Virus record (IMG/VR): IMGVR_UViG_3300025030_000041
Location: 1 to 64,000 of that record
Strand: one strand, 5' to 3'
Length of the DNA stretch: 64,000 nt
Part shown: piece after piece, positions 13,964 to 24,804 of the stretch
Numbering within the stretch: the stretch's first letter is position 1
Layout of the letters: each line of letters starts with the position of its first letter
The notes under the pieces: generated by a model
The model's input: only the letters and a program-made list of their open reading frames with translations
Database searches by the model: none
Told to the model about the DNA's origin: nothing
Program-made: the position numbers and the translations under genes

Positions 13964-14037
13964 TAATTTAAAAACTCACCATGTGCCAAATTTTACATTC
14001 TCTATCTAATTTAATTTGTTGCTCTTTAATTTTGCTT

Positions 14038-14232
14038 TTATAATATTTCATTGTTAAACTTAAAACTAAAAAGTCCTTCAAATGCATTTCTACCCGTTCC
14101 ATCGTTTGAAAATACAGTATAGTTAGTAAATTTTATATTACTCATATCTACATCAGAAAATTCTTTTTCTAATACAATTTTTAATTGCATAGGAGTAATT
14201 CTATTATCAAAATGTAATTTAGTTGATACCAT
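14038..14232 (-). CDS. Hypothetical early protein
   Basis: ORF track; first gene after the promoter at about 14277-14305. Confidence 0.55.
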   Translation of the reverse strand: MVSTKLHFDNRITPMQLKIVLEKEFSDVDMSNIKFTNYTVFSNDGTGRNAFEGLFSFKFNNEIL

Positions 14233-14276
14233 AGCATTATATTATATTATTAAATAGTTAAACAATAAAATTAAAT

Positions 14277-14305
14277 ACAATGTAAAATTAAGAAATAGTT
14301 TTGAC
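14277..14305 (-). promoter_or_regulatory. Early-type promoter driving the leftward cassette cluster
   Basis: Minus strand tcaaaactatttcttaattttacattgt shares aaaactatttctta with the 46591/49677 repeat. Confidence 0.55.
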
Positions 14306-14438
14306 ATTTAAAAATAAAATATTTAAATATTTTGTAACATATTGTCTTATAATACATTATTTTTATTAATTATATAAGAGTTTGGAGTTTTTCATATAAT
14401 TAAATTATGGAAATACTTATTAAAATGAGAATAAAAAT

Positions 14439-14465
14439 AAAACAATTTATCTTATTTTTTATAAG
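14439..14465 (+). promoter_or_regulatory. Putative middle promoter AAAACA-N15-TATAAG
   Basis: Same motif recurs upstream of several replication genes. Confidence 0.5.
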
Positions 14466-14494
14466 AGATTAGAAACTTAAAAACATTATTCATT

Positions 14495-15391
14495 ATGGCA
14501 AAAATAACAAATTTATCTGATTTAATTATAAAAAAGTTTGAGAATAGTACTGATGTTAAATTAGTAAACACGTTTGCTGATATTAGTGATTATATATCAA
14601 CGGGTAATTACTTATTAAATGCTCAACTTAGTGGAAGTTTATTAGGTGGAATACCTAATAATAGAATTACGACTTTAGCCGGTGATAGCGGGACAGGTAA
14701 AACATATTTAGCTCTTAATATTTGTAGGGAAGCCCAGAGAAATGGATATTTTATAGTATATGTAGATACTGAAGCTGCAGTATCAAAAGATATTATGATG
14801 GATTTTGGTATAGATACTGACACATCTAAATTATTATATGCTGGAATATCAAATATTGAAGACTTCGGATTACTTGGTAATAATATTATACAAATATCGA
14901 AAGACCAAAGAGCTAAGGGAGAGACTCCTAAGATATTAATTATATTAGATTCCCAAGGTATGCTAAATTCAAAAAAAGAAATAGATGATTTAAATAAAGG
15001 AAAGAATGCATCTGATATGGGAACTAGAGCTAAAGAATTAAGAAAATTATACAGAAATATAACTTATGAATTTAGTAATAACGGAATTACCTTTATTCCA
15101 TTAAACCACACTTACTGTTTAACGAGTGGGCATAATATTCAAATGGGAGATAATTCTTTAAAAGATATTAAAGATATACAAATTGGTGAATATGTAAAAA
15201 CGTTAGAAGGTAATAAAGAAGTAATAAATACATTTAATTTTGAAAATTTAGAGTTAATAGAATTAACTTTGTCAGATAATACAGTTGTTAAATGTACAAA
15301 AGACCATAAATTTTTAGTATCTAGTAATAATGAATTAATTTGGAAAAATGCAGATGAATTAAATGAAAATGATGAAATTTTAAGTATATAG
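14495..15391 (+). CDS. uvsX: UvsX/RecA recombinase N-fragment fused to a split-intein N part
   Basis: Walker A GDSGTGKT, YVDTE, ILDS, NHTY, then CLTSG... intein with block B CTKDH. Confidence 0.92.
   Translation: MAKITNLSDLIIKKFENSTDVKLVNTFADISDYISTGNYLLNAQLSGSLLGGIPNNRITTLAGDSGTGKTYLALNICREAQRNGYFIVYVDTEAAVSKDIMMDFGIDTDTSKLLYAGISNIEDFGLLGNNIIQISKDQRAKGETPKILIILDSQGMLNSKKEIDDLNKGKNASDMGTRAKELRKLYRNITYEFSNNGITFIPLNHTYCLTSGHNIQMGDNSLKDIKDIQIGEYVKTLEGNKEVINTFNFENLELIELTLSDNTVVKCTKDHKFLVSSNNELIWKNADELNENDEILSI
15116..15391 (+). mobile_element. Split intein N-fragment (91 aa)
   Basis: Starts at Cys208 (CLTSGHNI); TxxH block B; ends at the stop codon. Confidence 0.9.
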
Positions 15392-15417
15392 TAAATTATC
15401 TTAACTAATTAAAAAAA

Positions 15418-15543
15418 ATGAAAGACATGAATACAAAAAAAATTATTAAAAAACGTATAATTGAAAAACAAGAAAAAGTTTTTGATATTGAAGTAAAAGA
15501 TAGTCACCATTATTTTTTAGAAAACGGAGTGATTAGCCATAAT
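15418..15543 (+). mobile_element. Split intein C-fragment (42 aa)
   Basis: Basic N-terminus, block F VFDIEV, HN followed by Ser. Confidence 0.9.
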
Positions 15544-16524
15544 TCAGGTGGAATGTATGAAGCAACTAAGCAAGGCGGCGGGTGTTTAATACCAGGGACT
15601 AAGATATATACATTCAATAATGTATTAAAATCAATAGAAGGTGTTGAGTCTGGTGATTATGTTAAAACCTTATGTGGATATAAAGAAGTTTTAGAAACAT
15701 ATACATTTGAAAAATCTACTATAAAAATAGAATTTGAAGACACCACAAATATAATATGTTCAGAAGACCATCGTTTTTTAATTTCAGGAGACTATACAAT
15801 TGAAAGTAATTGGAAAAAAGCTAAAGACTTAGCTAATAATGAAAATATTTTAAAAATTGAAAATAATAATATTTTCAATTTAAAAATTAAAAATATTAAT
15901 CATTTATATACACAAAAAGTTCATGATATTAGTGTTAAAGATGTACATCATTATATATCTGAAACTGGTATAATAAATCATAATTCAGGAAATACCTATT
16001 CTGCATCAACTATTTTATTTTTATCTAAGTCATCTCTTAAAGAGGACGGCCAAACTAAAACGGGAATTGTAGTAAGATCTAAAACACAAAAAAATCGATT
16101 AGCTAAACCAATTGATATAGAATTCCATATTAGTCATATTAGCGGAATGAATCCGTATGTTGGATTACAAGATTATATTAGTTGGGAAAATTGTGGAGTA
16201 GTTAGAGGTACTCTACTTACTAAAAAAGAATTTGAAAAAGATAAGTCAAATAACCAAAAAACATATCATGAATTCGAACACAATAATGAAAAGTATTATG
16301 TAATTCCGTCTGATAAAGCTAGAAATATAGTTATAAGAGACGGATGTAAAGAAGTTCCATTTAAAAAACTATTTACATCAGAAGTATTTACAGAAAATGT
16401 TATTAAAGAATTAGATGAAAAAGTAATACGACCTAAATTTAAATATGATAAAATTAAAGACTTATTATCTAATGAATTAACTGAAGTTTTTGGTGATACT
16501 ACAGACGATGAATCAGACGAATAA
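15418..16524 (+). CDS. uvsX: UvsX C-fragment: intein C part, 13-aa extein, second mini-intein, C-extein
   Basis: VFDIEV...ISHN/S, then SGGMYEATKQGGG, CLIPG...INHN/S, then SGNTYSASTILFL...KNRLAKP. Confidence 0.92.
   Translation: MKDMNTKKIIKKRIIEKQEKVFDIEVKDSHHYFLENGVISHNSGGMYEATKQGGGCLIPGTKIYTFNNVLKSIEGVESGDYVKTLCGYKEVLETYTFEKSTIKIEFEDTTNIICSEDHRFLISGDYTIESNWKKAKDLANNENILKIENNNIFNLKIKNINHLYTQKVHDISVKDVHHYISETGIINHNSGNTYSASTILFLSKSSLKEDGQTKTGIVVRSKTQKNRLAKPIDIEFHISHISGMNPYVGLQDYISWENCGVVRGTLLTKKEFEKDKSNNQKTYHEFEHNNEKYYVIPSDKARNIVIRDGCKEVPFKKLFTSEVFTENVIKELDEKVIRPKFKYDKIKDLLSNELTEVFGDTTDDESDE
15583..15984 (+). mobile_element. Contiguous mini-intein (134 aa)
   Basis: C1 CLIPGTKI, block B CSEDH, block F VHDISV, terminal HN followed by Ser; no endonuclease domain. 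Confidence 0.9.
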
Positions 16525-16576
16525 GCAATTAATTTTATAAAAAACCTTAATGAATACTAAAAAATATTAAAATTAA

Positions 16577-17032
16577 ATGAAAAGAAAAATATTATTAATT
16601 TGTTTATCACTATTTTTAGTTGGAAAAACTTTTTCACGTAATACATTTAAAGATACTACAAACGTATTAAATAATTTAGAAACAATACTTTTTCATGTAA
16701 CTTTTTCTAAATTAAATTCAGAATTTAAAAATGAATTAAAATTTAGAGAAGATTTAGTTGTTGGTAATCTAAGTATAGCCGAATTATATTTTTCTAATAA
16801 AAAATCAAAATACTCTAAAATATCATTTTTATTTAAAAACGATATTTTCATAGGATATACTATATATTTTAGAAAAACAAAAAGCCTAAAATATTATAGA
16901 AAGATATATGGCCCTTGTATAGAAATTAGGAAAAATGATAATCAAATAATATGGGCAAGCTCTAGTGGTAAAATACGAGCTATAGTTTCATTAGAAAAAC
17001 GTAAAGAATTAACAATTTTATTTAAAAAATAG
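16577..17032 (+). CDS. Hypothetical exported protein
   Basis: Signal-peptide-like MKRKILLICLSLFLVG. Confidence 0.6.
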   Translation: MKRKILLICLSLFLVGKTFSRNTFKDTTNVLNNLETILFHVTFSKLNSEFKNELKFREDLVVGNLSIAELYFSNKKSKYSKISFLFKNDIFIGYTIYFRKTKSLKYYRKIYGPCIEIRKNDNQIIWASSSGKIRAIVSLEKRKELTILFKK

Positions 17033-17034
17033 AT

Positions 17035-17331
17035 ATGAGTTTAAGAAAAAGTGTTCCAATAAAATATCATTTAAATTTACATAAATACCTTCCAAATTAT
17101 CCTACTAAAAATGATTTAATATTTGATTTAATAGACAAATTATCTAAAAACGATAAGCTTAAGTTTTCAATATCAACTATAAACCAAATTTATAAAGAAA
17201 AATTAGAAGATGAGTCGTTTAAAACAAAAATAAAAAAATACATAAATGAATTAATTGAAGACAAAAAAATAATTCAAGACGGGAATTTTTTTATTTTAAC
17301 TGAGCCCCTTATAAATTCATTCATAGAGTAA
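17035..17331 (+). CDS. Hypothetical protein (possible winged helix)
   Basis: ORF track; operon context. Confidence 0.6.
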   Translation: MSLRKSVPIKYHLNLHKYLPNYPTKNDLIFDLIDKLSKNDKLKFSISTINQIYKEKLEDESFKTKIKKYINELIEDKKIIQDGNFFILTEPLINSFIE

Positions 17332-17332
17332 A

Positions 17333-17518
17333 ATGAAAAAACTAATAATATTTTTATTTTCGCTTATCCTACTAATGGTAGTAGGAGAAATTCGTTGTAT
17401 TTATAAAGCTATAAATTGCAATTGGGAACCTATTGGCAAAGCTGAAATAATATATACAATGTCGTCATTTACTGGATTAGGAAGTATTGTTGGATGGACG
17501 AATATTAAAGATAATTAA
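17333..17518 (+). CDS. Small membrane protein
   Basis: Two hydrophobic segments. Confidence 0.6.
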   Translation: MKKLIIFLFSLILLMVVGEIRCIYKAINCNWEPIGKAEIIYTMSSFTGLGSIVGWTNIKDN

Positions 17519-17527
17519 AAAATATTT

Positions 17528-18235
17528 ATGTTAGAGTTTAGTCAAAATATAAATTACCTCGAAAAAGTATTCTTCTTTTATATATGTCAAAGTAAAGACT
17601 TAATTAGTATATGTAATCCTACTTTTTTTGATAATGAGAAAATAGGAATTACTTTTAAAATAGTTAAATCATTTACTGAAAAATATGAGAAGCCCCCATC
17701 TTCAAATCAAGTTAAACAAATTATAAAATTAAAGGGGTTTGAAATAACTGACCAAGATATTGATTTATTATATAGTGTAAATTTAGATGAATATGACCCG
17801 TCATGGTTAGAAGAATATACTAATACATTTTTATTACTTCGTAATTTAAATGTAAATATGATAGATCTTCTTACATATTTAAAAACTACTACAATAACTC
17901 CAAGTAATATTCAAGAAGTAGTTGATTATGTAAGGAATTTCGTAAGCAAAAAAATTAATTCTAATGTAGTTATTGGTAAAGAAGATGGACTAGACTTTTC
18001 TAAAGTAGAAGACCATTACCAACTTACAAAAACTAATAAATTTTCTACTGGATATACTTACTTCGACAAAGTCCTCGGAGGAGGTTGGGAGAAGAAAACT
18101 TTTAACGTTACAATGGCGCGTCCAAAATTAGGTAAGTGTTTTTTAGGAAATACTATGATTAAAATAAGAAATAAAAAAACTAATATAATTCAAGAAATAT
18201 CAATAGAAGATTTTTATAAATTAATAAAAAAATAA
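17528..18235 (+). CDS. 41: Replicative helicase (gp41/DnaB) N-fragment plus a 32-aa intein N part
   Basis: STGYTYFDKVLGGG, Walker A ARPKLGK broken by CFLGNTMIKIRN. Confidence 0.9.
   Translation: MLEFSQNINYLEKVFFFYICQSKDLISICNPTFFDNEKIGITFKIVKSFTEKYEKPPSSNQVKQIIKLKGFEITDQDIDLLYSVNLDEYDPSWLEEYTNTFLLLRNLNVNMIDLLTYLKTTTITPSNIQEVVDYVRNFVSKKINSNVVIGKEDGLDFSKVEDHYQLTKTNKFSTGYTYFDKVLGGGWEKKTFNVTMARPKLGKCFLGNTMIKIRNKKTNIIQEISIEDFYKLIKK
18137..18235 (+). mobile_element. Atypically short split-intein N-fragment (32 aa)
   Basis: Block A CFLGNTMIKI directly after the P-loop GK, then a stop codon. Confidence 0.85.
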
Positions 18236-18273
18236 ATTAAATCGTTTTCCAAGTTTTCCTCTTCCAATTTTTA

Positions 18274-18281
18274 TATAAATA
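18274..18281 (+). promoter_or_regulatory. Late promoter TATAAATA of the endonuclease gene
   Basis: Exact T4 late consensus about 20 nt upstream of ATG 18301. Confidence 0.65.
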
Positions 18282-18300
18282 ATAAAAAATAAAAAAAGTT

Positions 18301-19470
18301 ATGAAACTTATAAAGATTGTAGACGATGTGCCAAGAATTAGTAAATTTGGTGTATATGACGAATATGAGTGTCAGTTGTGTGGAAAAAAATGTAAAAAGA
18401 AAAATAGTTTATCTAAGCATTTGTCTACTATTCATGGTTTAAACAATAATGATAAACGTAAAGACTATTATGATAAATACTTAAAAGTTGATGGAGAGGG
18501 AATATGTGTAATATCAGGCAAACCTACTAAATTTATTAATTTTAGTGGTTATAACAAATATATAAATACTCCAGAGGTTAATAAAATAAAATTAAATACT
18601 AAAGGGATAACTTATTTAATGAAAGTTAAAAAACTTTCATACGACGACGCATTAATAGAAAGACAAAATATTGTAAAAAGAAATTCCGAAGGGGTTAAAA
18701 AAGCATTTAGTGAAAAAATAAAGAAAGATCCACTTTGCTGGAATAAGTCTAGCATATATTGTAAAGAATACTGGATTAATAAAGGATATTCTAAAGAAGA
18801 CTCTATTCAATTAGCCAATGATAAGATAACTAAAAATAGAGAAAAACTACAAAAAATTTTAAAAGACGATCCGTCTTATATGAAAAATAAATTAAATACA
18901 TCTTTAGACTATTGGTTAAAAAAGACAAATGGAAATGAAGAAGAAGCTAAAAAATTATTATCTGAACGCCAAACTACTTTTAATTTAGAAAAATGTATAG
19001 AAAAATATGGCGAAGACGACGGAAGAAAAAGATGGGTAGAAAGACAAGAAAAATGGTGTAAAAACTATAAAAAAAGTAATTATTCTAAAATTAGTCAAGA
19101 ATTATTTTGGAGTATTTATGATAAATTAGAGGTTTCTTATAAAAATAATAAATCTATATATTTCGCGGAATTATTAAATAATCGTAAAGACGAAAGCGAA
19201 AAAAATAATGAATACCGATTAAAATTAAAAAATAGGGTTATTATTCCAGATTTTTTCATTTTAGAAAATAAAAAAATAATAGAATTTGATGGAGTGTATT
19301 GGCATAATGAACATAAAATAAAGTATCCAAATCAAAACCGAGATAATGAAAAGTCTAACGACTTAATTAATGAGGGTTATTCTATTTTAAGGATTGTTGA
19401 GGACTTGTATTATAAAAATAAAGAAGAAATAGTTAAACAATGTTTAGAATTTATATATAAGGATTTATGA
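18301..19470 (+). CDS. Free-standing homing endonuclease (C2H2 Zn finger plus Vsr/DUF559-like nuclease)
   Basis: CQLC...HLSTIH; C-terminal PDFFILENKKIIEFDGVYWH; lies between the intein halves. Confidence 0.82.
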   Translation: MKLIKIVDDVPRISKFGVYDEYECQLCGKKCKKKNSLSKHLSTIHGLNNNDKRKDYYDKYLKVDGEGICVISGKPTKFINFSGYNKYINTPEVNKIKLNTKGITYLMKVKKLSYDDALIERQNIVKRNSEGVKKAFSEKIKKDPLCWNKSSIYCKEYWINKGYSKEDSIQLANDKITKNREKLQKILKDDPSYMKNKLNTSLDYWLKKTNGNEEEAKKLLSERQTTFNLEKCIEKYGEDDGRKRWVERQEKWCKNYKKSNYSKISQELFWSIYDKLEVSYKNNKSIYFAELLNNRKDESEKNNEYRLKLKNRVIIPDFFILENKKIIEFDGVYWHNEHKIKYPNQNRDNEKSNDLINEGYSILRIVEDLYYKNKEEIVKQCLEFIYKDL

Positions 19471-19829
19471 GTAAAAATAATAGTGCTATACGTAAATTTA
19501 TAGATTCAATTAATATTGATGAGTACGATGTATTAACTGATACTGGGTGGGAAGATATTAAATCTATTAATAAGACTATAAAATATAGAGCATTTAGAGT
19601 AGAAACTAAATCTTTTTATTTAGAAGGGGCCGACGATCATATTATTTTTGATAAAGATTATAATGAAATATATTTAAAAGAATTAAGTATTGGCGATAGT
19701 GTATTAACTGAAAATGGAATTGAAATAGTTTTAAATATAAAAGATTTAGAATATTCAGATAATATGTATGACTTAGAAATTAATTCTGAAAATCACAGGT
19801 ATTATACGAATGGTATTTTAAGTCATAAT
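19467..19829 (+). mobile_element. Split intein C-fragment (121 aa)
   Basis: Contains blocks B, F and G; ends in HN before Ser, which completes the GK-S P-loop. Confidence 0.88.
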
Positions 19830-20690
19830 AGTACAATTCTTTCAAATTTTGCTGCAAATTCAATACGTAATGGAAAAAATGCAGCCGTTATTACACTAGA
19901 GTTATCTGATAGGAAATATATGAGGCGAGTGGGGGCTAATCTTTTAAATATTACAACTGGCGAATATAAAGATTTTGATGAAACTAGAAAAGATTTAATT
20001 AAACATAAACTTGATAATTTTTATGGAATGTTAGGGTGGCCTGCTGGTAATTTATGGATTAAAGAATTTCCGACTGGAACTGCGTCATTTATTGATATTG
20101 AAAATTCTTTGCTTAGGCGTGAAGATAAAACTGGAATTAAATATGACTTAGTAATAGTTGACTATCTTAATTTGATGAAAAGCGATGGCAATTCTAATCA
20201 AAATATGTATGAAAGAATAAAACGAATATCAGAAGGATTAAGAGCAATAAGCCAAAGAAATGAATGGTGTGTAGTATCAGCAACACAAGTTAGAAAAGAG
20301 TATTTTGATAAAGACGTTTTAGGGATGGATGCTGCAGCAGAAAGTAGTGGATTAATTGCAACAGTCGACTCTTTATTTGCTGCCTCTAGGGATTCTCTTA
20401 GTGATATTGCAAGAATAGAATTAATAGCAAACAGAGATGAAGGATATACCGGTAGTTCTTGTAATTTTAAGATGCAATTTAAAAATGCAAAGATGATTGA
20501 GACAAATGAGTTTCAGTATTATGGCGATGAAGACGGCACTAACTTAGAAAAAGAGATGCTAGAATCTTATAAGAAAAATGAAATTATAAGTGCTATTGCA
20601 GGACAATCAATAGGAACTAATATTGAAATACCTGAAGTTAATAAAAATAATAAAGAAACAGATTACGAATCAATTTTAAATTCTATTTAG
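19467..20690 (+). CDS. 41: Helicase C-fragment preceded by a 121-aa intein C part
   Basis: ADDH block B, MYDL block F, LSHN/S; then ITLELS, VIVDYLNL, SATQ, AAESSG. Confidence 0.9.
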   Translation: MSKNNSAIRKFIDSINIDEYDVLTDTGWEDIKSINKTIKYRAFRVETKSFYLEGADDHIIFDKDYNEIYLKELSIGDSVLTENGIEIVLNIKDLEYSDNMYDLEINSENHRYYTNGILSHNSTILSNFAANSIRNGKNAAVITLELSDRKYMRRVGANLLNITTGEYKDFDETRKDLIKHKLDNFYGMLGWPAGNLWIKEFPTGTASFIDIENSLLRREDKTGIKYDLVIVDYLNLMKSDGNSNQNMYERIKRISEGLRAISQRNEWCVVSATQVRKEYFDKDVLGMDAAAESSGLIATVDSLFAASRDSLSDIARIELIANRDEGYTGSSCNFKMQFKNAKMIETNEFQYYGDEDGTNLEKEMLESYKKNEIISAIAGQSIGTNIEIPEVNKNNKETDYESILNSI

Positions 20691-20691
20691 T

Positions 20692-21186
20692 ATGTGTTTT
20701 TGTTTAGAATATGAACGGCTTATAAATGATAAATATGACTATTGTATAGATCATGCGTTTGATGATTGTGTATGTGGAAACCTAAAACAACGAAACAAAA
20801 ATGTGTGCAGTGAATGCGACTATAATATTACTAAAAAAGAAATTGGTTTTTCTATATGCCCTTTATGTAATGATGAATTCATTTTTAGTAAATTTTTAAA
20901 TACTGCAATTAAAAATGAAAAAACTAGATTAATTGCAAATTTAATAACTCATTATAGACATGTACATCAATCTTCTTGGAATACCTCATGTCATTTTATA
21001 TCAAATAGTTGGGGTCAATTAGCATACGCAAAAGCTAAAGATGAGCATAACAATCGAGCAAAAAGACAAATACTCAGAAAATGTTTTAATTGGGTAAATA
21101 ACAATGGTATTAAAAAAGAAAATTTTCTTGAATTACAAAATAATGATGAAAAAACTATTGAATTAATTAATAAAATATATAAATGA
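20692..21186 (+). CDS. Cys/His-rich zinc-binding hypothetical protein
   Basis: Several CxxC pairs and THYRHVH. Confidence 0.65.
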   Translation: MCFCLEYERLINDKYDYCIDHAFDDCVCGNLKQRNKNVCSECDYNITKKEIGFSICPLCNDEFIFSKFLNTAIKNEKTRLIANLITHYRHVHQSSWNTSCHFISNSWGQLAYAKAKDEHNNRAKRQILRKCFNWVNNNGIKKENFLELQNNDEKTIELINKIYK

Positions 21187-21443
21187 TGAAATACTATAAT
21201 CAAAAATTAGAGCGAGGCCTTATAAAAATAGGGTGCAAAAGAGTCTGGTTTAGTGATAAATCTGGGTATTGGTTAGAGAAAAATTTTAAATTTAAAGATT
21301 TAAATTTAAGGTTATATATTGAACCTGACCAGAAAAAGTTCTATTTTAGTATAAAGCTAGAAACTCCAGAGCAATACGAAACTATTAAAACTTATAAATT
21401 GACTTTATCTAATGTTAAAAAACTTTTGAAAAAGTATTCATAG
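21183..21443 (+). CDS. Hypothetical protein
   Basis: ORF track. Confidence 0.6.
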   Translation: MMKYYNQKLERGLIKIGCKRVWFSDKSGYWLEKNFKFKDLNLRLYIEPDQKKFYFSIKLETPEQYETIKTYKLTLSNVKKLLKKYS

Positions 21444-21498
21444 AGCTAAATCTTTTTAAAGATAAAATAAATAAATAAAGGATTACGTATTTTATCTT

Positions 21499-24400
21499 AT
21501 GGATATATCAAAACTTTTTTTCTTTAATAAAAACGGTGAAAATATAAATTTCACGTTTAATTCGTCTTTAAATAAGTATGAGAGTACTATTTATTTTGAT
21601 AAATTATCAAGTTCTCTATTTGATAATGAAAATCTTTATATTCTAGAAAAGTCCGGTGACTCATATATTTATCCTACTTTTACTGCTACCCAATCCTTAA
21701 AATTTAAATGGAAAACTCTATCTGATAAAGAGAATATCTTTTTATATGATATTGAAACAAGTAATGAAGATAATAACGACTATATTATAACAAAAGACGA
21801 AGTTTTAATATCATATGACCCATCGTTATATGGTGATAAAATTCCATTAAATATTAATATAGCATTTAACCCCTTGGATGAAACTAATTATGAAAGAGTA
21901 TTAGAAATATACTTGCTTGATATAGCTTCACCTGGAACATCCGATTTAATTGGAGAAATAAGTTTTTATGGTGAAGGAATAGACGAAGACGAAAGATATA
22001 GAATATGGTTAGCTAATTTTGGTATTAAATTTAATAGAGAGGATGCTTTAATATTAAAGGATTATGATATAAAAGAGGCTTTACCAAATTGGGAAATTAT
22101 TAATAACAAGCGGAAAGAAGCATTATTAACTAGGCCAGAGGTATACCCATATGTTGGAACATATAAAGGATTGACTAATATTATTAATTTTTTAGGGTTC
22201 AGAGATTTTTTATCAGTAAAAGAGTATTGGCAAAATAAAAACACAGATTCGCCATACTTTAATAAATTTACATTAATTGATATAAGTGATTTATTAGATG
22301 ATGGAAAAATAAATTCTATTGATTTAACTACATATAATAATAACGTTAAATTTACTCCTGAATTTAAAAAAACCGGATTATTAGGATTATATTATAAAAT
22401 AACAGATACAACGGGTGTAGAAGATGCTGACGGAATACCAGAGGTAGTACGAACTACTGAATTCAGCAATGACGAGATTTTATATAAACTTAATAGATTA
22501 AAAGATAAATTAAAAGATGAAATACTTCCAATTAATGTTAAAATTATAGATATAGTTGGTGAGTTTTTATTTTTTCAAAAATTTTCAATTAGAACTTGGA
22601 ATAATAGAGTTGAAATAAAAGATTTTCAAATTAACGAAAATTATGATATATCAGTTTATCCTTTAAATGATACTGAAGCATATTTATATGATCTTAAACC
22701 TCTATTAATAAAAATAAATCAATCTTCTACTAATGTAAATTTCGGAAATTATATATTTAATAATAGCCAGTCAAATCCATATGACTGGTCTCAAAAATAC
22801 CCGCCAACTGATATTCCTTTATTAATTGAATCAATAAAGACTTTTTATAATGAAATACAACAGTCTAAAAAAGATGGATTAAATGAACCATTACCGTGGA
22901 ACTTCGGAGATGAACCTGAAAATATAATTGGATGTCCAGTTATATTTAAAGTTAAGTTTGACGAAATTACATGGGATATATTATCAAATTCAACATGGGA
23001 TAGTCTAGACGATTTTTATACATGGGATACTATAAACTTTAAATCAATTTATGAAATAGAATGGAATATAAGTAAAAAAATCGGAACACCTTACTCTTTT
23101 ACTTATCGAGGATATATAAAAGATTTACATACATTACCTCATTTTTTACCATATGAAGGAGAATATGACGTCTTTGCTAAACTATATGATCTTAACTCTG
23201 GTCATAGCATAAATTATGAAAATAAAATTATAAATGTTAAAAAAATAGAACCTGAAATAATCGCATTATCTAGAATTGAAGATAAATTTGGCGATACTTG
23301 GGATGACTTATCTAATGTAACATGGGATGAAATAGAATCATCATACTGGTATAATCCTATTGTAAACATAGTTAATCAAAATAATAACGAGATAGATTTA
23401 CAAAGAAATTTATACGAGTGGGATTTTTATAAAGATAAAATAAAAGATGCTAAAATATTTAATGACGACACTTTTATATATGAATCCTTAAATACTAGCC
23501 TGCATTCTCTTAAAAATTTATATGGTATACCTAAAAAAGGAGGAAGTGATGTATACGAATGGACATGGGATGATTTTGAAAATGCAACATGGGATGACTT
23601 ATTTCATATGAAATGGTATCATATGGTATATCACTCTGATTTTTTAGCAGGTTTTCTTATTAAGAAACTTCCAAGAAAAGGAGATATTATACAAATGAAT
23701 AAATATTCAGATTTTGTATTTCAAACTACTATGCTAACTTTACAAGATGCAATCGATGAATTGAATTTATCTAGCCATAATGGAATATCGTTATTTAAAT
23801 ATGAGGTTCAAAGTTATCATAAAAAATATAAAGTAACATTAACAAAAAGTACAACTGATTTTACATATGACTTAACGATTAATGAATCTAATATTATATA
23901 TATTGCAACTCCTTTACAAGATATAAATGAAATTAGAGACGCATTGATTAATCTAATTAATAATGAAATTACCCAACATGTTACGGCAATTAGTGCTTCA
24001 AATGATAGTTTTTTAATAATCGGTGATGTGGAAGAAGATGACTATATATTATCAGTAACTAGCCCAAGTTTAATAGATTTTGAATTAATACAAGATCCTG
24101 GTCCATTTATTAGTGCGACTGCAAAAGACTTTGGAAAAGAAAGTTATGTAATTATAAATTATATTTCATCTGGCGATGACGACGACTCTAGTCCATTCTC
24201 ACCAAGAACCTCTAATTTCTTAGAAGGCAACAAATACTCGTATAACGAACCTATTTGGATTTATAATAAATCTCAAATTGAATCTTTAAATAATAAATAT
24301 ATAAGTCTAGATATTGAAAATTTATTTGTTGATGCACCATTTAGCGATATTGCTAATGGAAATACTAATAATATTCAGTATTGGATAGATAATAAATATA

Positions 24401-24804
24401 TTAAGCATAATACTGAAACTGATGAACAGACTGGATTTATACCGTCTATAGTAGATACAAATGTATTTAATTTAATACAGCTTAAAGTATATGAAGATTC
24501 GTTCATTATACCTAAATGGTGTCCGGTATTTTTTGTTATTAATAATGTTCCAGGTAAAACTGAATTTGTATGGACATTATATGATGAGGATAATAATAAA
24601 AAATTAATTCAGATTAAGGATGTTCCATTTTTTATATGGAGATTTAATGAATTAGGGCAGTATAGAATAGACGTACAAATTACAGATAATAAAGGAAATA
24701 TTTATAATAAAAGTTTTTCTAAATTTGTAAATGTTAAATCTAAAAATGATTATATTTCTTTTATAGAACGAGAAATTAATAAGCTTTCCAAATTAATTCT
24801 TTAA
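21499..24804 (+). CDS. Large virion structural protein (baseplate wedge-like) with TWD repeats
   Basis: AATAAATA upstream; GTYKGLTNIINFLG resembles baseplate wedge/tail-I motifs; PKD/Ig-like C-terminus. Confidence 0.6.
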   Translation: MDISKLFFFNKNGENINFTFNSSLNKYESTIYFDKLSSSLFDNENLYILEKSGDSYIYPTFTATQSLKFKWKTLSDKENIFLYDIETSNEDNNDYIITKDEVLISYDPSLYGDKIPLNINIAFNPLDETNYERVLEIYLLDIASPGTSDLIGEISFYGEGIDEDERYRIWLANFGIKFNREDALILKDYDIKEALPNWEIINNKRKEALLTRPEVYPYVGTYKGLTNIINFLGFRDFLSVKEYWQNKNTDSPYFNKFTLIDISDLLDDGKINSIDLTTYNNNVKFTPEFKKTGLLGLYYKITDTTGVEDADGIPEVVRTTEFSNDEILYKLNRLKDKLKDEILPINVKIIDIVGEFLFFQKFSIRTWNNRVEIKDFQINENYDISVYPLNDTEAYLYDLKPLLIKINQSSTNVNFGNYIFNNSQSNPYDWSQKYPPTDIPLLIESIKTFYNEIQQSKKDGLNEPLPWNFGDEPENIIGCPVIFKVKFDEITWDILSNSTWDSLDDFYTWDTINFKSIYEIEWNISKKIGTPYSFTYRGYIKDLHTLPHFLPYEGEYDVFAKLYDLNSGHSINYENKIINVKKIEPEIIALSRIEDKFGDTWDDLSNVTWDEIESSYWYNPIVNIVNQNNNEIDLQRNLYEWDFYKDKIKDAKIFNDDTFIYESLNTSLHSLKNLYGIPKKGGSDVYEWTWDDFENATWDDLFHMKWYHMVYHSDFLAGFLIKKLPRKGDIIQMNKYSDFVFQTTMLTLQDAIDELNLSSHNGISLFKYEVQSYHKKYKVTLTKSTTDFTYDLTINESNIIYIATPLQDINEIRDALINLINNEITQHVTAISASNDSFLIIGDVEEDDYILSVTSPSLIDFELIQDPGPFISATAKDFGKESYVIINYISSGDDDDSSPFSPRTSNFLEGNKYSYNEPIWIYNKSQIESLNNKYISLDIENLFVDAPFSDIANGNTNNIQYWIDNKYIKHNTETDEQTGFIPSIVDTNVFNLIQLKVYEDSFIIPKWCPVFFVINNVPGKTEFVWTLYDEDNNKKLIQIKDVPFFIWRFNELGQYRIDVQITDNKGNIYNKSFSKFVNVKSKNDYISFIEREINKLSKLIL

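Follow-up and report, generated by a model that had tools for sequence, protein, structure and literature searches.

Naturally split inteins with an atypical break are known from two positions, namely after strand b2 as in VidaL and PolB16, where the N-terminal intein half (IntN) has 15-16 amino acids (aa), and after the first helix as in AceL and GOS TerL, where it has 25-37 aa (PMC13014065). Phage genes fractured by split inteins were described for gp41-1 to gp41-9, in which adjacent open reading frames (ORFs) for gp41-like helicases are joined by a split intein, with a GIY-YIG or Vsr-like endonuclease between the halves and an element resembling a T4 late promoter upstream of the endonuclease (Dassa et al. 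2009, PMC2677866). The endonuclease I-Bth0305I acts as a homodimer which cuts the uninterrupted allele beside the insertion site and leaves two-base 5' overhangs, its specificity being relaxed and centred on 14 bp (PMC3239194). The boundary between the Lys and the Ser or Thr of the P-loop (K|S/T) is the 'classic' intein site of P-loop proteins and is called site b in DnaB (PMC5050341, PMC4760082). Here we describe positions 17528-20690 of a stretch of 64,000 nucleotides (nt) of phage DNA (the window, from IMG/VR record IMGVR_UViG_3300025030_000041), where a gene for a DnaB/gp41-like replicative helicase lies in two pieces with an endonuclease gene between them. We consider it highly probable that this is a fractured helicase gene with a class 1 intein at GK|S, itself split into a 32-aa IntN and a 121-aa C-terminal half (IntC) by the gene of an EDxHD endonuclease, and that the intein would splice in trans and the whole unit would home.

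The region is filled by three ORFs on the same strand, the parts of which are as follows.

17528-18235, + strand: N-fragment ORF, 235 aa, comprising 203 aa of extein and 32 aa of IntN, then TAA.
17528-18136, + strand: N-extein of the DnaB/gp41-like replicative helicase, 203 aa, ending ..ARPKLGK (Walker A).
18137-18235, + strand: 32-aa IntN from Cys1 (IntN codons 18137-18232) plus the TAA, with block A, strands b1-b2 and helix a1.
18236-18300, + strand: spacer of 65 nt, carrying TATAAATAA at 18274-18282, a possible late-type promoter.
18301-19470, + strand: free-standing endonuclease ORF, 389 aa, with a C2H2-type zinc (Zn) finger, helical repeats and a C-terminal nuclease domain.
18370-18435, + strand: C2H2-type Zn finger at aa 24-45 of the endonuclease (Pfam zf-C2H2 at aa 22-45, below cut-off).
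19156-19467, + strand: Vsr-like / EDxHD nuclease domain at about aa 286-389, with the motif IIEFDGVYWH at 19276-19305.
19467-20690, + strand: C-fragment ORF, 407 aa, comprising 121 aa of IntC and 286 aa of extein.
19467-19829, + strand: IntC, 121 aa, with block B ..GADDH.., block F ..NMYDLE.. and block G ..GILSHN.
19830-20690, + strand: C-extein of the helicase, 286 aa plus stop, starting STILS, in which the Walker A Ser is the +1 nucleophile.

The TAA of the N-fragment is followed by 65 nt that contain further stops, and the TGA of the endonuclease overlaps the ATG of the C-fragment as ATGA at 19467-19470, the two reading frames being different. The host halves are thus adjacent on one strand, with a split intein at the break and an endonuclease ORF between them, as in fractured genes. 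The preliminary description of this DNA had reported the interrupted Walker A motif, an IntN of 32 aa, an IntC of 121 aa with blocks B, F and G and, between the two, a Zn-finger/Vsr-like endonuclease of 389 aa that overlaps the start of IntC, and all of these hold; the observation is real, its coordinates and lengths are confirmed and it lies far beyond chance.

The position of the break was determined from the two helicase exteins. On the profile of PHROG 19 (DnaB-like helicase), aa 23-203 of the N-fragment cover positions 179-366 and aa 122-393 of the C-fragment cover positions 367-607, and as positions 366 and 367 adjoin, one extein takes up exactly where the other stops, at the boundary of Lys and Ser in Walker A. 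The C-extein is matched by Pfam DnaB_C (E 1e-11). The nearest homologs (P0002-P0004) are intact helicases of 491-495 aa with a Walker A motif of the form ..K(I/L)GK|S.., to which the N-extein is 63-69% and the C-extein 78-79% identical. A protein search with the N-fragment returned the query alone, the intact helicases being outside the length range that it covered, and the N-fragments of relatives were read from their contigs. No second DnaB-like gene was found in the genome, which is about 92% complete, and being the sole DnaB-like gene the split helicase gene has to work for the phage.

Judged by sequence, the two intervening pieces are halves of one class 1 intein. Cys follows ..KLGK directly at aa 204 of the N-fragment and is intein position 1, and the block B His, block F and the block G ..GILSHN followed by Ser are those of a class 1 intein; a profile of the intein family matches 19473-19832 with E 6e-53. 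One relative of 615 aa (P0039) has a contiguous mini-intein of 162 aa at the identical GK|S site of the helicase. The window IntN aligns gap-free with the N-terminus of contiguous inteins at this site, with 16-17 of the 32 residues identical (16/32 in P0039), and IntC aligns with the last ~114 residues of the P0039 insert at 54% identity. Across an alignment of 63 members of the intein family (A2), the residues G68, T78, A96, H99, G125, M141, D143, L159, H161 and N162 are invariant, and all are kept in the window. The 121-aa IntC contains no cysteine at all.

The Hedgehog/intein (HINT) fold was tested on the contiguous relative P0039 and not on the two pieces of the window. Its AlphaFold2 (AF2) model, with a predicted local distance difference test score (pLDDT) of 93.2 and a predicted template modelling score (pTM) of 0.87, has the HINT fold: residues 2-22 form strands and residues 23-38 a helix, residues 39-51 are a linker of low confidence, and the remaining HINT barrel follows. 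VidaL (6VGV) was the top Foldseek match of this model (E 6e-11, target-normalised template modelling score (TMt) 0.83), and the remaining PDB matches listed are inteins, save one related bacterial intein-like (BIL) domain. On the model the window IntN ends at residue 32 and IntC begins at about residue 42, which puts the break (residues 33-41) in the variable linker that follows the first helix; it is in precisely this linker that contiguous relatives vary by tens of residues.

In the endonuclease, Pfam DUF559 matches aa 315-384 above cut-off (E 3e-5) and the zf-C2H2 match has E 0.0018. The protein has 739 homologs, several of which are labelled very-short-patch-repair endonuclease by the Joint Genome Institute (JGI). 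A profile built from 50 homologs matched the catalytic domain of I-Bth0305I in the PDB (3R3P, E 1.6e-4), and Foldseek with the AF2 model (pLDDT 90) returned 3R3P as the top match (probability 1.0, TMt 0.72), with Vsr (1VSR) in fourth place. D317, H335 and E367 do not vary across the 50 homologs, and at least 90% of these keep E328 and D330; the residues correspond to the EDxHD motif of the I-Bth0305I family (PMC3239194). By its sequence and predicted structure the endonuclease belongs to the Vsr-like family, which was first reported from fractured genes (PMC2677866), and by analogy it would cleave DNA in the manner of I-Bth0305I. When the whole locus was compared by blastn with 50,697 phage records, the sole match was one of 98 nt at 75.5% identity (window 19210-19307) to LR756500.1, an uncultured phage of 462 kb, and it falls on the conserved nuclease motif.

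To place the element among its relatives, the 121-aa IntC was used as query in an exhaustive search of representative protein clusters, which gave matches to 988 clusters at E <=1e-3 and to 538 at E <=1e-10. IntC stands at the N-terminus of the protein, and the intein is therefore split, in 126 of the best 150 clusters; it is internal in 24. Among the C-exteins of the 145 nearest clusters that were scanned, the terminase large subunit accounts for 80 and DnaB-like helicase for 16, and the others include AAA/ClpX-like, Rad50-like (AAA_23), ABC, clamp-loader and PIF1-type ATPases. The extein after ..SHN begins with Ser or Thr in the sequences listed, and in contiguous members the intein follows GK. 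Going by these sequences, the window element is part of a large family of P-loop inteins which are mostly split after the first helix. The preliminary description had presented it as an atypically split allele at the P-loop; the split position and the site stand, but the state is not rare and is that of the majority, as among the best 120 helicase homologs 83 begin with this IntC, one has it contiguous and 36 are without it. The remark that inteins with a short IntN come mainly from terminases agrees with the literature (PMC13014065), with the share of terminases among the nearest IntC clusters (80/145) and with the only solved match of the IntN, which, searched together with four extein residues, aligned end to end with CatN (6DSL_A) at an E of 0.05, the query being short.

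The contigs of five divergent helicase C-fragments were read, three of these fragments being 41-47% identical to that of the window. The same three-ORF layout was found with an IntN of 34 aa in L001, 30 aa in L003, 47 aa in L004/L005 and 35 aa in L009. In all six helicase loci examined, the window included, the IntN has 30-47 aa, and the ATG of IntC abuts or overlaps the stop of the endonuclease in five of the six as well as in a terminase locus (L008). Two loci carry remnants in the place of a full endonuclease.

L010, a helicase locus, 1658-1790: IntN of 35 aa, with a remnant of ~40 codons of the endonuclease C-terminus in a gap of 133 nt.
L008, the terminase locus, 2425-2577: IntN of 34 aa, with a 50-aa remnant of the C-terminus of the same endonuclease, overlapping IntC.

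In both of these the endonuclease has decayed and the split intein persists. A VidaL-like split before the helix was considered for two relatives with a long IntC (P0066, P0070) and rejected, as their contigs show an IntN of 35 aa that includes the helix. Two other relatives (P0021, P0053) are helicase C-fragments with an N-terminal IntC and, further downstream, a second and contiguous intein which follows ..ATQ.. and ends ..THN|S. A scan of viral contigs with the C-fragment as query gave no confirmed relative.

In the mechanism that we propose, the two helicase polypeptides would be made separately, and the short IntN would dock onto a partly formed IntC and so complete the HINT fold. Trans-splicing would then proceed through a thioester at Cys1, transfer to Ser+1 and cyclisation of Asn121, and would yield a helicase of 489 aa with its P-loop intact. 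The endonuclease would perhaps be expressed late, from an ATAAATA-type promoter of its own, and would cut the helicase alleles without intein in co-infecting relatives, close to the codons of the P-loop; repair would copy the entire IntN-endonuclease-IntC cassette into the cut allele.

We also looked at the expression signals of the locus. The spacer holds TATAAATA at 18274-18281, and the one-nucleotide longer TATAAATAA lies 19 nt before the ATG of the endonuclease; a similar motif stands upstream of the endonuclease in L001 and L004, and none in L003. Of the 222 long ORFs of the genome, 42 have ATAAATAA within the 55 nt that precede them (3.5 expected, an enrichment of ~12-fold), and the spacing of the motif to the ATG peaks at 5-9 and 20-24 nt (examples are the ORFs at window 21499, 24854, 54475 and 63676), a pattern which suggests a promoter like the late one of T4 in which the first base is relaxed. 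Sequences resembling a Shine-Dalgarno site are rare (13/222 ORFs in the genome), and this rarity suggests a host that is not reliant on Shine-Dalgarno pairing; TAAGGAT lies just upstream of the start of the C-fragment, within the 3' end of the endonuclease gene.

The layout could be explained otherwise if the endonuclease ORF sat in a self-splicing intron, in which case splicing of the RNA would yield a single ORF and that of the intein would take place in cis. A member of the same endonuclease family, I-Bth0305I, is indeed encoded in a group I intron (PMC3239194), and P0039 shows that a contiguous version of the intein exists. We nevertheless regard an intron as very improbable: Rfam, scanned permissively over 14000-21500 (E up to 1), gave no family match and thus no sign of a group I intron, while the non-coding sequence amounts to only 65 nt in a region of 22-26% G+C, the one local fold tested being no better than shuffles. 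The close junction of the endonuclease stop and the IntC start, repeated across the helicase loci and in L008, and the prevalence of proteins that begin with IntC among the best 150 clusters also speak against it. Another notion is that the split is an artefact of assembly or gene calling, made from a contiguous intein with an endonuclease domain. The contig is metagenomic, but the N-fragment ends in TAA ahead of a spacer with stops, and the endonuclease is in another frame than IntC across the ATGA. In addition, identical proteins occur on 5-8 contigs, all sampled words of the sequence are present in Logan contigs of two samples, and the same layout recurs in independent assemblies from other studies, so that an artefact appears exceedingly improbable.

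It is also unlikely that the gene is decaying, with halves that splice no longer and a helicase function that is lost or supplied by the host. One residue beside block B, before ADxH, does differ from the family majority, being Gly in the window and Cys in most relatives, in a column that is not invariant. Against decay, every invariant residue of the intein and every conserved residue of the nuclease is kept, both exteins are of full length and 63-79% identical to intact homologs, and the genome is without another DnaB-like gene to take over. The layout is moreover conserved in other phages at 41-47% protein identity, which requires purifying selection.

Several points weigh against the fractured, trans-splicing and homing gene that we favour, the Gly beside block B being one of them. 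The preliminary description had given the endonuclease its own TATAAATA late promoter; the motif is present and fits the upstream motif of the genome, and to this extent the claim stands, but the promoter is a motif match, and TATAAATA itself is not enriched genome-wide, with 73 and 66 copies on the two strands vs 83 expected. A hairpin that would mask the ribosome-binding site upstream of the endonuclease was not significant, the local fold having a z of -1.2 vs shuffles. No RNA run with sequence of the locus was found among the runs searched. As to the direction of evolution, the contiguous form may have come first or may have arisen through loss of the endonuclease.

The fractured helicase gene with its intein and endonuclease was also considered as a mobile unit. 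A related phage contig (L006) has an intact UvsX gene and an intact helicase gene, and its intein site is therefore empty; 57 of 90 nt around the site are identical to the flanks in the window, and the site is a candidate substrate for the endonuclease. The alleles seen are thus empty, occupied by the cassette with a full endonuclease, occupied by the cassette with a remnant, and occupied by a contiguous mini-intein, and this spread of states, as read from sequence, fits a homing cycle. The terminase of the window genome itself is unoccupied.

In a tree of IntC sequences the window copy falls among terminase-hosted inteins with moderate support, and its IntC is 60-61% identical to that of the terminase-hosted P0246; a single helicase-hosted clade is not rejected by the approximately unbiased (AU) test (p 0.25). 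With this support and this p value we make no claim from the tree for a recent change of host gene by the window copy, a change that is possible. The inteins are homologous across host genes, which implies transfer between host genes at the level of the family. We also entertain, as a doubtful but conceivable extension, that the IntN-endonuclease-IntC cassette is a generalist mobile unit which passes between phage ATPases of unrelated kinds (terminase, replicative helicase, clamp loader, Rad50-like, ClpX-like, ABC and PIF1-like) at their Walker A GK|S/T sites, and that the window copy was taken rather recently from a terminase-hosted copy. Such an origin is suggested by the identity of IntC to P0246, set against only 41-47% for the whole C-fragments of other helicase loci, and by the remnant of the same endonuclease which the terminase locus L008 carries at the corresponding position.

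The source is an uncultured phage from a groundwater metagenome, and the locus is present in the assemblies of two samples of one study. Its contig has 246,115 bp, 25% G+C and an estimated completeness of 92%, and the window is its first 64 kb. The neighbourhood is T4-like, with a gene for UvsX recombinase upstream of the helicase, and the order UvsX, helicase, gp47/gp46-like nuclease genes is found in related contigs. The UvsX gene (window 14495-16524) itself contains two inteins with only 13 residues between them.

UvsX intein 1, canonically split: IntN of 91 aa at 15116-15388, a 26-nt gap without endonuclease, and IntC of 42 aa at 15418-15543.
UvsX intein 2, 15583-15984: contiguous mini-intein of 134 aa.

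The UvsX protein of the related contig L006 has 403 aa. Outside the window the phage has two more matches to intein splicing domains, at G000:C1:73209-73688 (+) and 195943-196326 (-), in open frames of 576 and 986 aa, so that its inteins number at least five, two in UvsX, one in the helicase and two beyond the window. The ORF at window 21499-24804 (1101 aa) has two ATAAATA motifs 21-25 nt upstream and matches only phrog_28177, a PHROG with function unknown.

There is a demand for natural split inteins whose IntN is short, both in protein semisynthesis and in protein editing in live cells, as a short half can be prepared as a peptide. The present locus offers a natural pair of a 32-aa IntN and a 121-aa IntC with Cys1/Ser+1 chemistry and a cysteine-free IntC, and the pool of variants around it (988 clusters in at least seven kinds of ATPase, mostly split and largely uncharacterised) could be mined for fast or mutually orthogonal pairs. 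The only replicative helicase of the phage would depend on trans-splicing. As empty, occupied, endonuclease-decayed and contiguous alleles can be compared, the family is a good system in which to study the co-operation of endonuclease and intein and the attraction of inteins to P-loops.

Compared with the described systems, the locus resembles the fractured genes of Dassa et al. in the adjacent gp41-like helicase ORFs joined by a split intein, and in the endonuclease between the halves (PMC2677866); the late-promoter-like element that these genes have upstream of the endonuclease may have a counterpart in the motif of the spacer. In gp41-1 to gp41-7, however, the break is at the position of residue 356 of P-SSM2 gp41, outside the P-loop, and the intein has the canonical split at the endonuclease domain with a long IntN, whereas in the window the break is in the P-loop and the IntN is short (PMC2677866). 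The gp41-1 type of split has an IntC of ~35-50 aa, which the 32/121-aa division of the window does not resemble, and the conserved upstream hairpin of the Dassa genes (PMC2677866) has no significant counterpart here. The endonuclease shares with I-Bth0305I the C-terminal nuclease fold, the conserved residues and a modular N-terminal DNA-binding region; I-Bth0305I belongs to a group I intron in recA and carries NUMOD/helix-turn-helix (HTH) modules, whereas that of the window is free-standing between the halves of a split intein and carries a C2H2-type Zn finger at its N-terminus (PDB 3R3P, PMC3239194). The P-loop inteins of DnaB site b, MCM site a, RFC site a and TerL1 site a are inserted at the same point, Walker A Lys|Ser/Thr, but these are contiguous, as mini-inteins or with an internal endonuclease, whereas that of the window is split and its endonuclease is free-standing (PMC4760082, PMC5050341).

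With its break after the first helix, the window element belongs to the second of the two atypical types, that of AceL and GOS TerL. Its separate ORFs, its IntN of 32 aa (range ~15-37 aa, PMC13014065) and its IntC of more than 100 aa are those of the S2 type; the VidaL type (S1) does not apply, as the IntN includes a helix instead of ending after b2 at ~16 aa. The S2 site after the first helix is shared with AceL-TerL, GOS-TerL and Cat, the consensus of such terminase inteins (PDB 6DSL), in which the IntN has 25, 37 and 30 aa, respectively (PMC13014065). These are hosted by terminases and have Cys+1 (table, PMC11766414), whereas the window intein is hosted by a replicative helicase and has Cys1/Ser+1. 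Given their Cys+1, the published terminase inteins may occupy another terminase site than the GK|T of the relatives found here.

In sequence, the solved protein closest to IntC is VidaL (6VGV, E 6e-8), followed by CatC (6DSL_B, E 0.003) and gp41-1 (E 0.009). The full name of VidaL is 'T4Lh-1', and its host may likewise be a T4-like helicase. VidaL (PDB 6VGV/6VGW) is a metagenomic, naturally atypically split intein, and it has in common with the window Cys1, a Ser after the terminal Asn, a short IntN and the lack of an endonuclease domain. Its split comes right after b2, with an IntN of 16 aa (PMC13014065), against a split after helix a1 in the window, and 45 residues precede its first aligned strand as against 32 + 23, or ~10 more, in the window. 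Atypically split inteins that sit in fractured phage genes together with a Vsr-like endonuclease are a known kind, of which the element is a new member, and it is not unusual in its family; it is nearest to VidaL by sequence and nearest to the terminase inteins by the position of its split.

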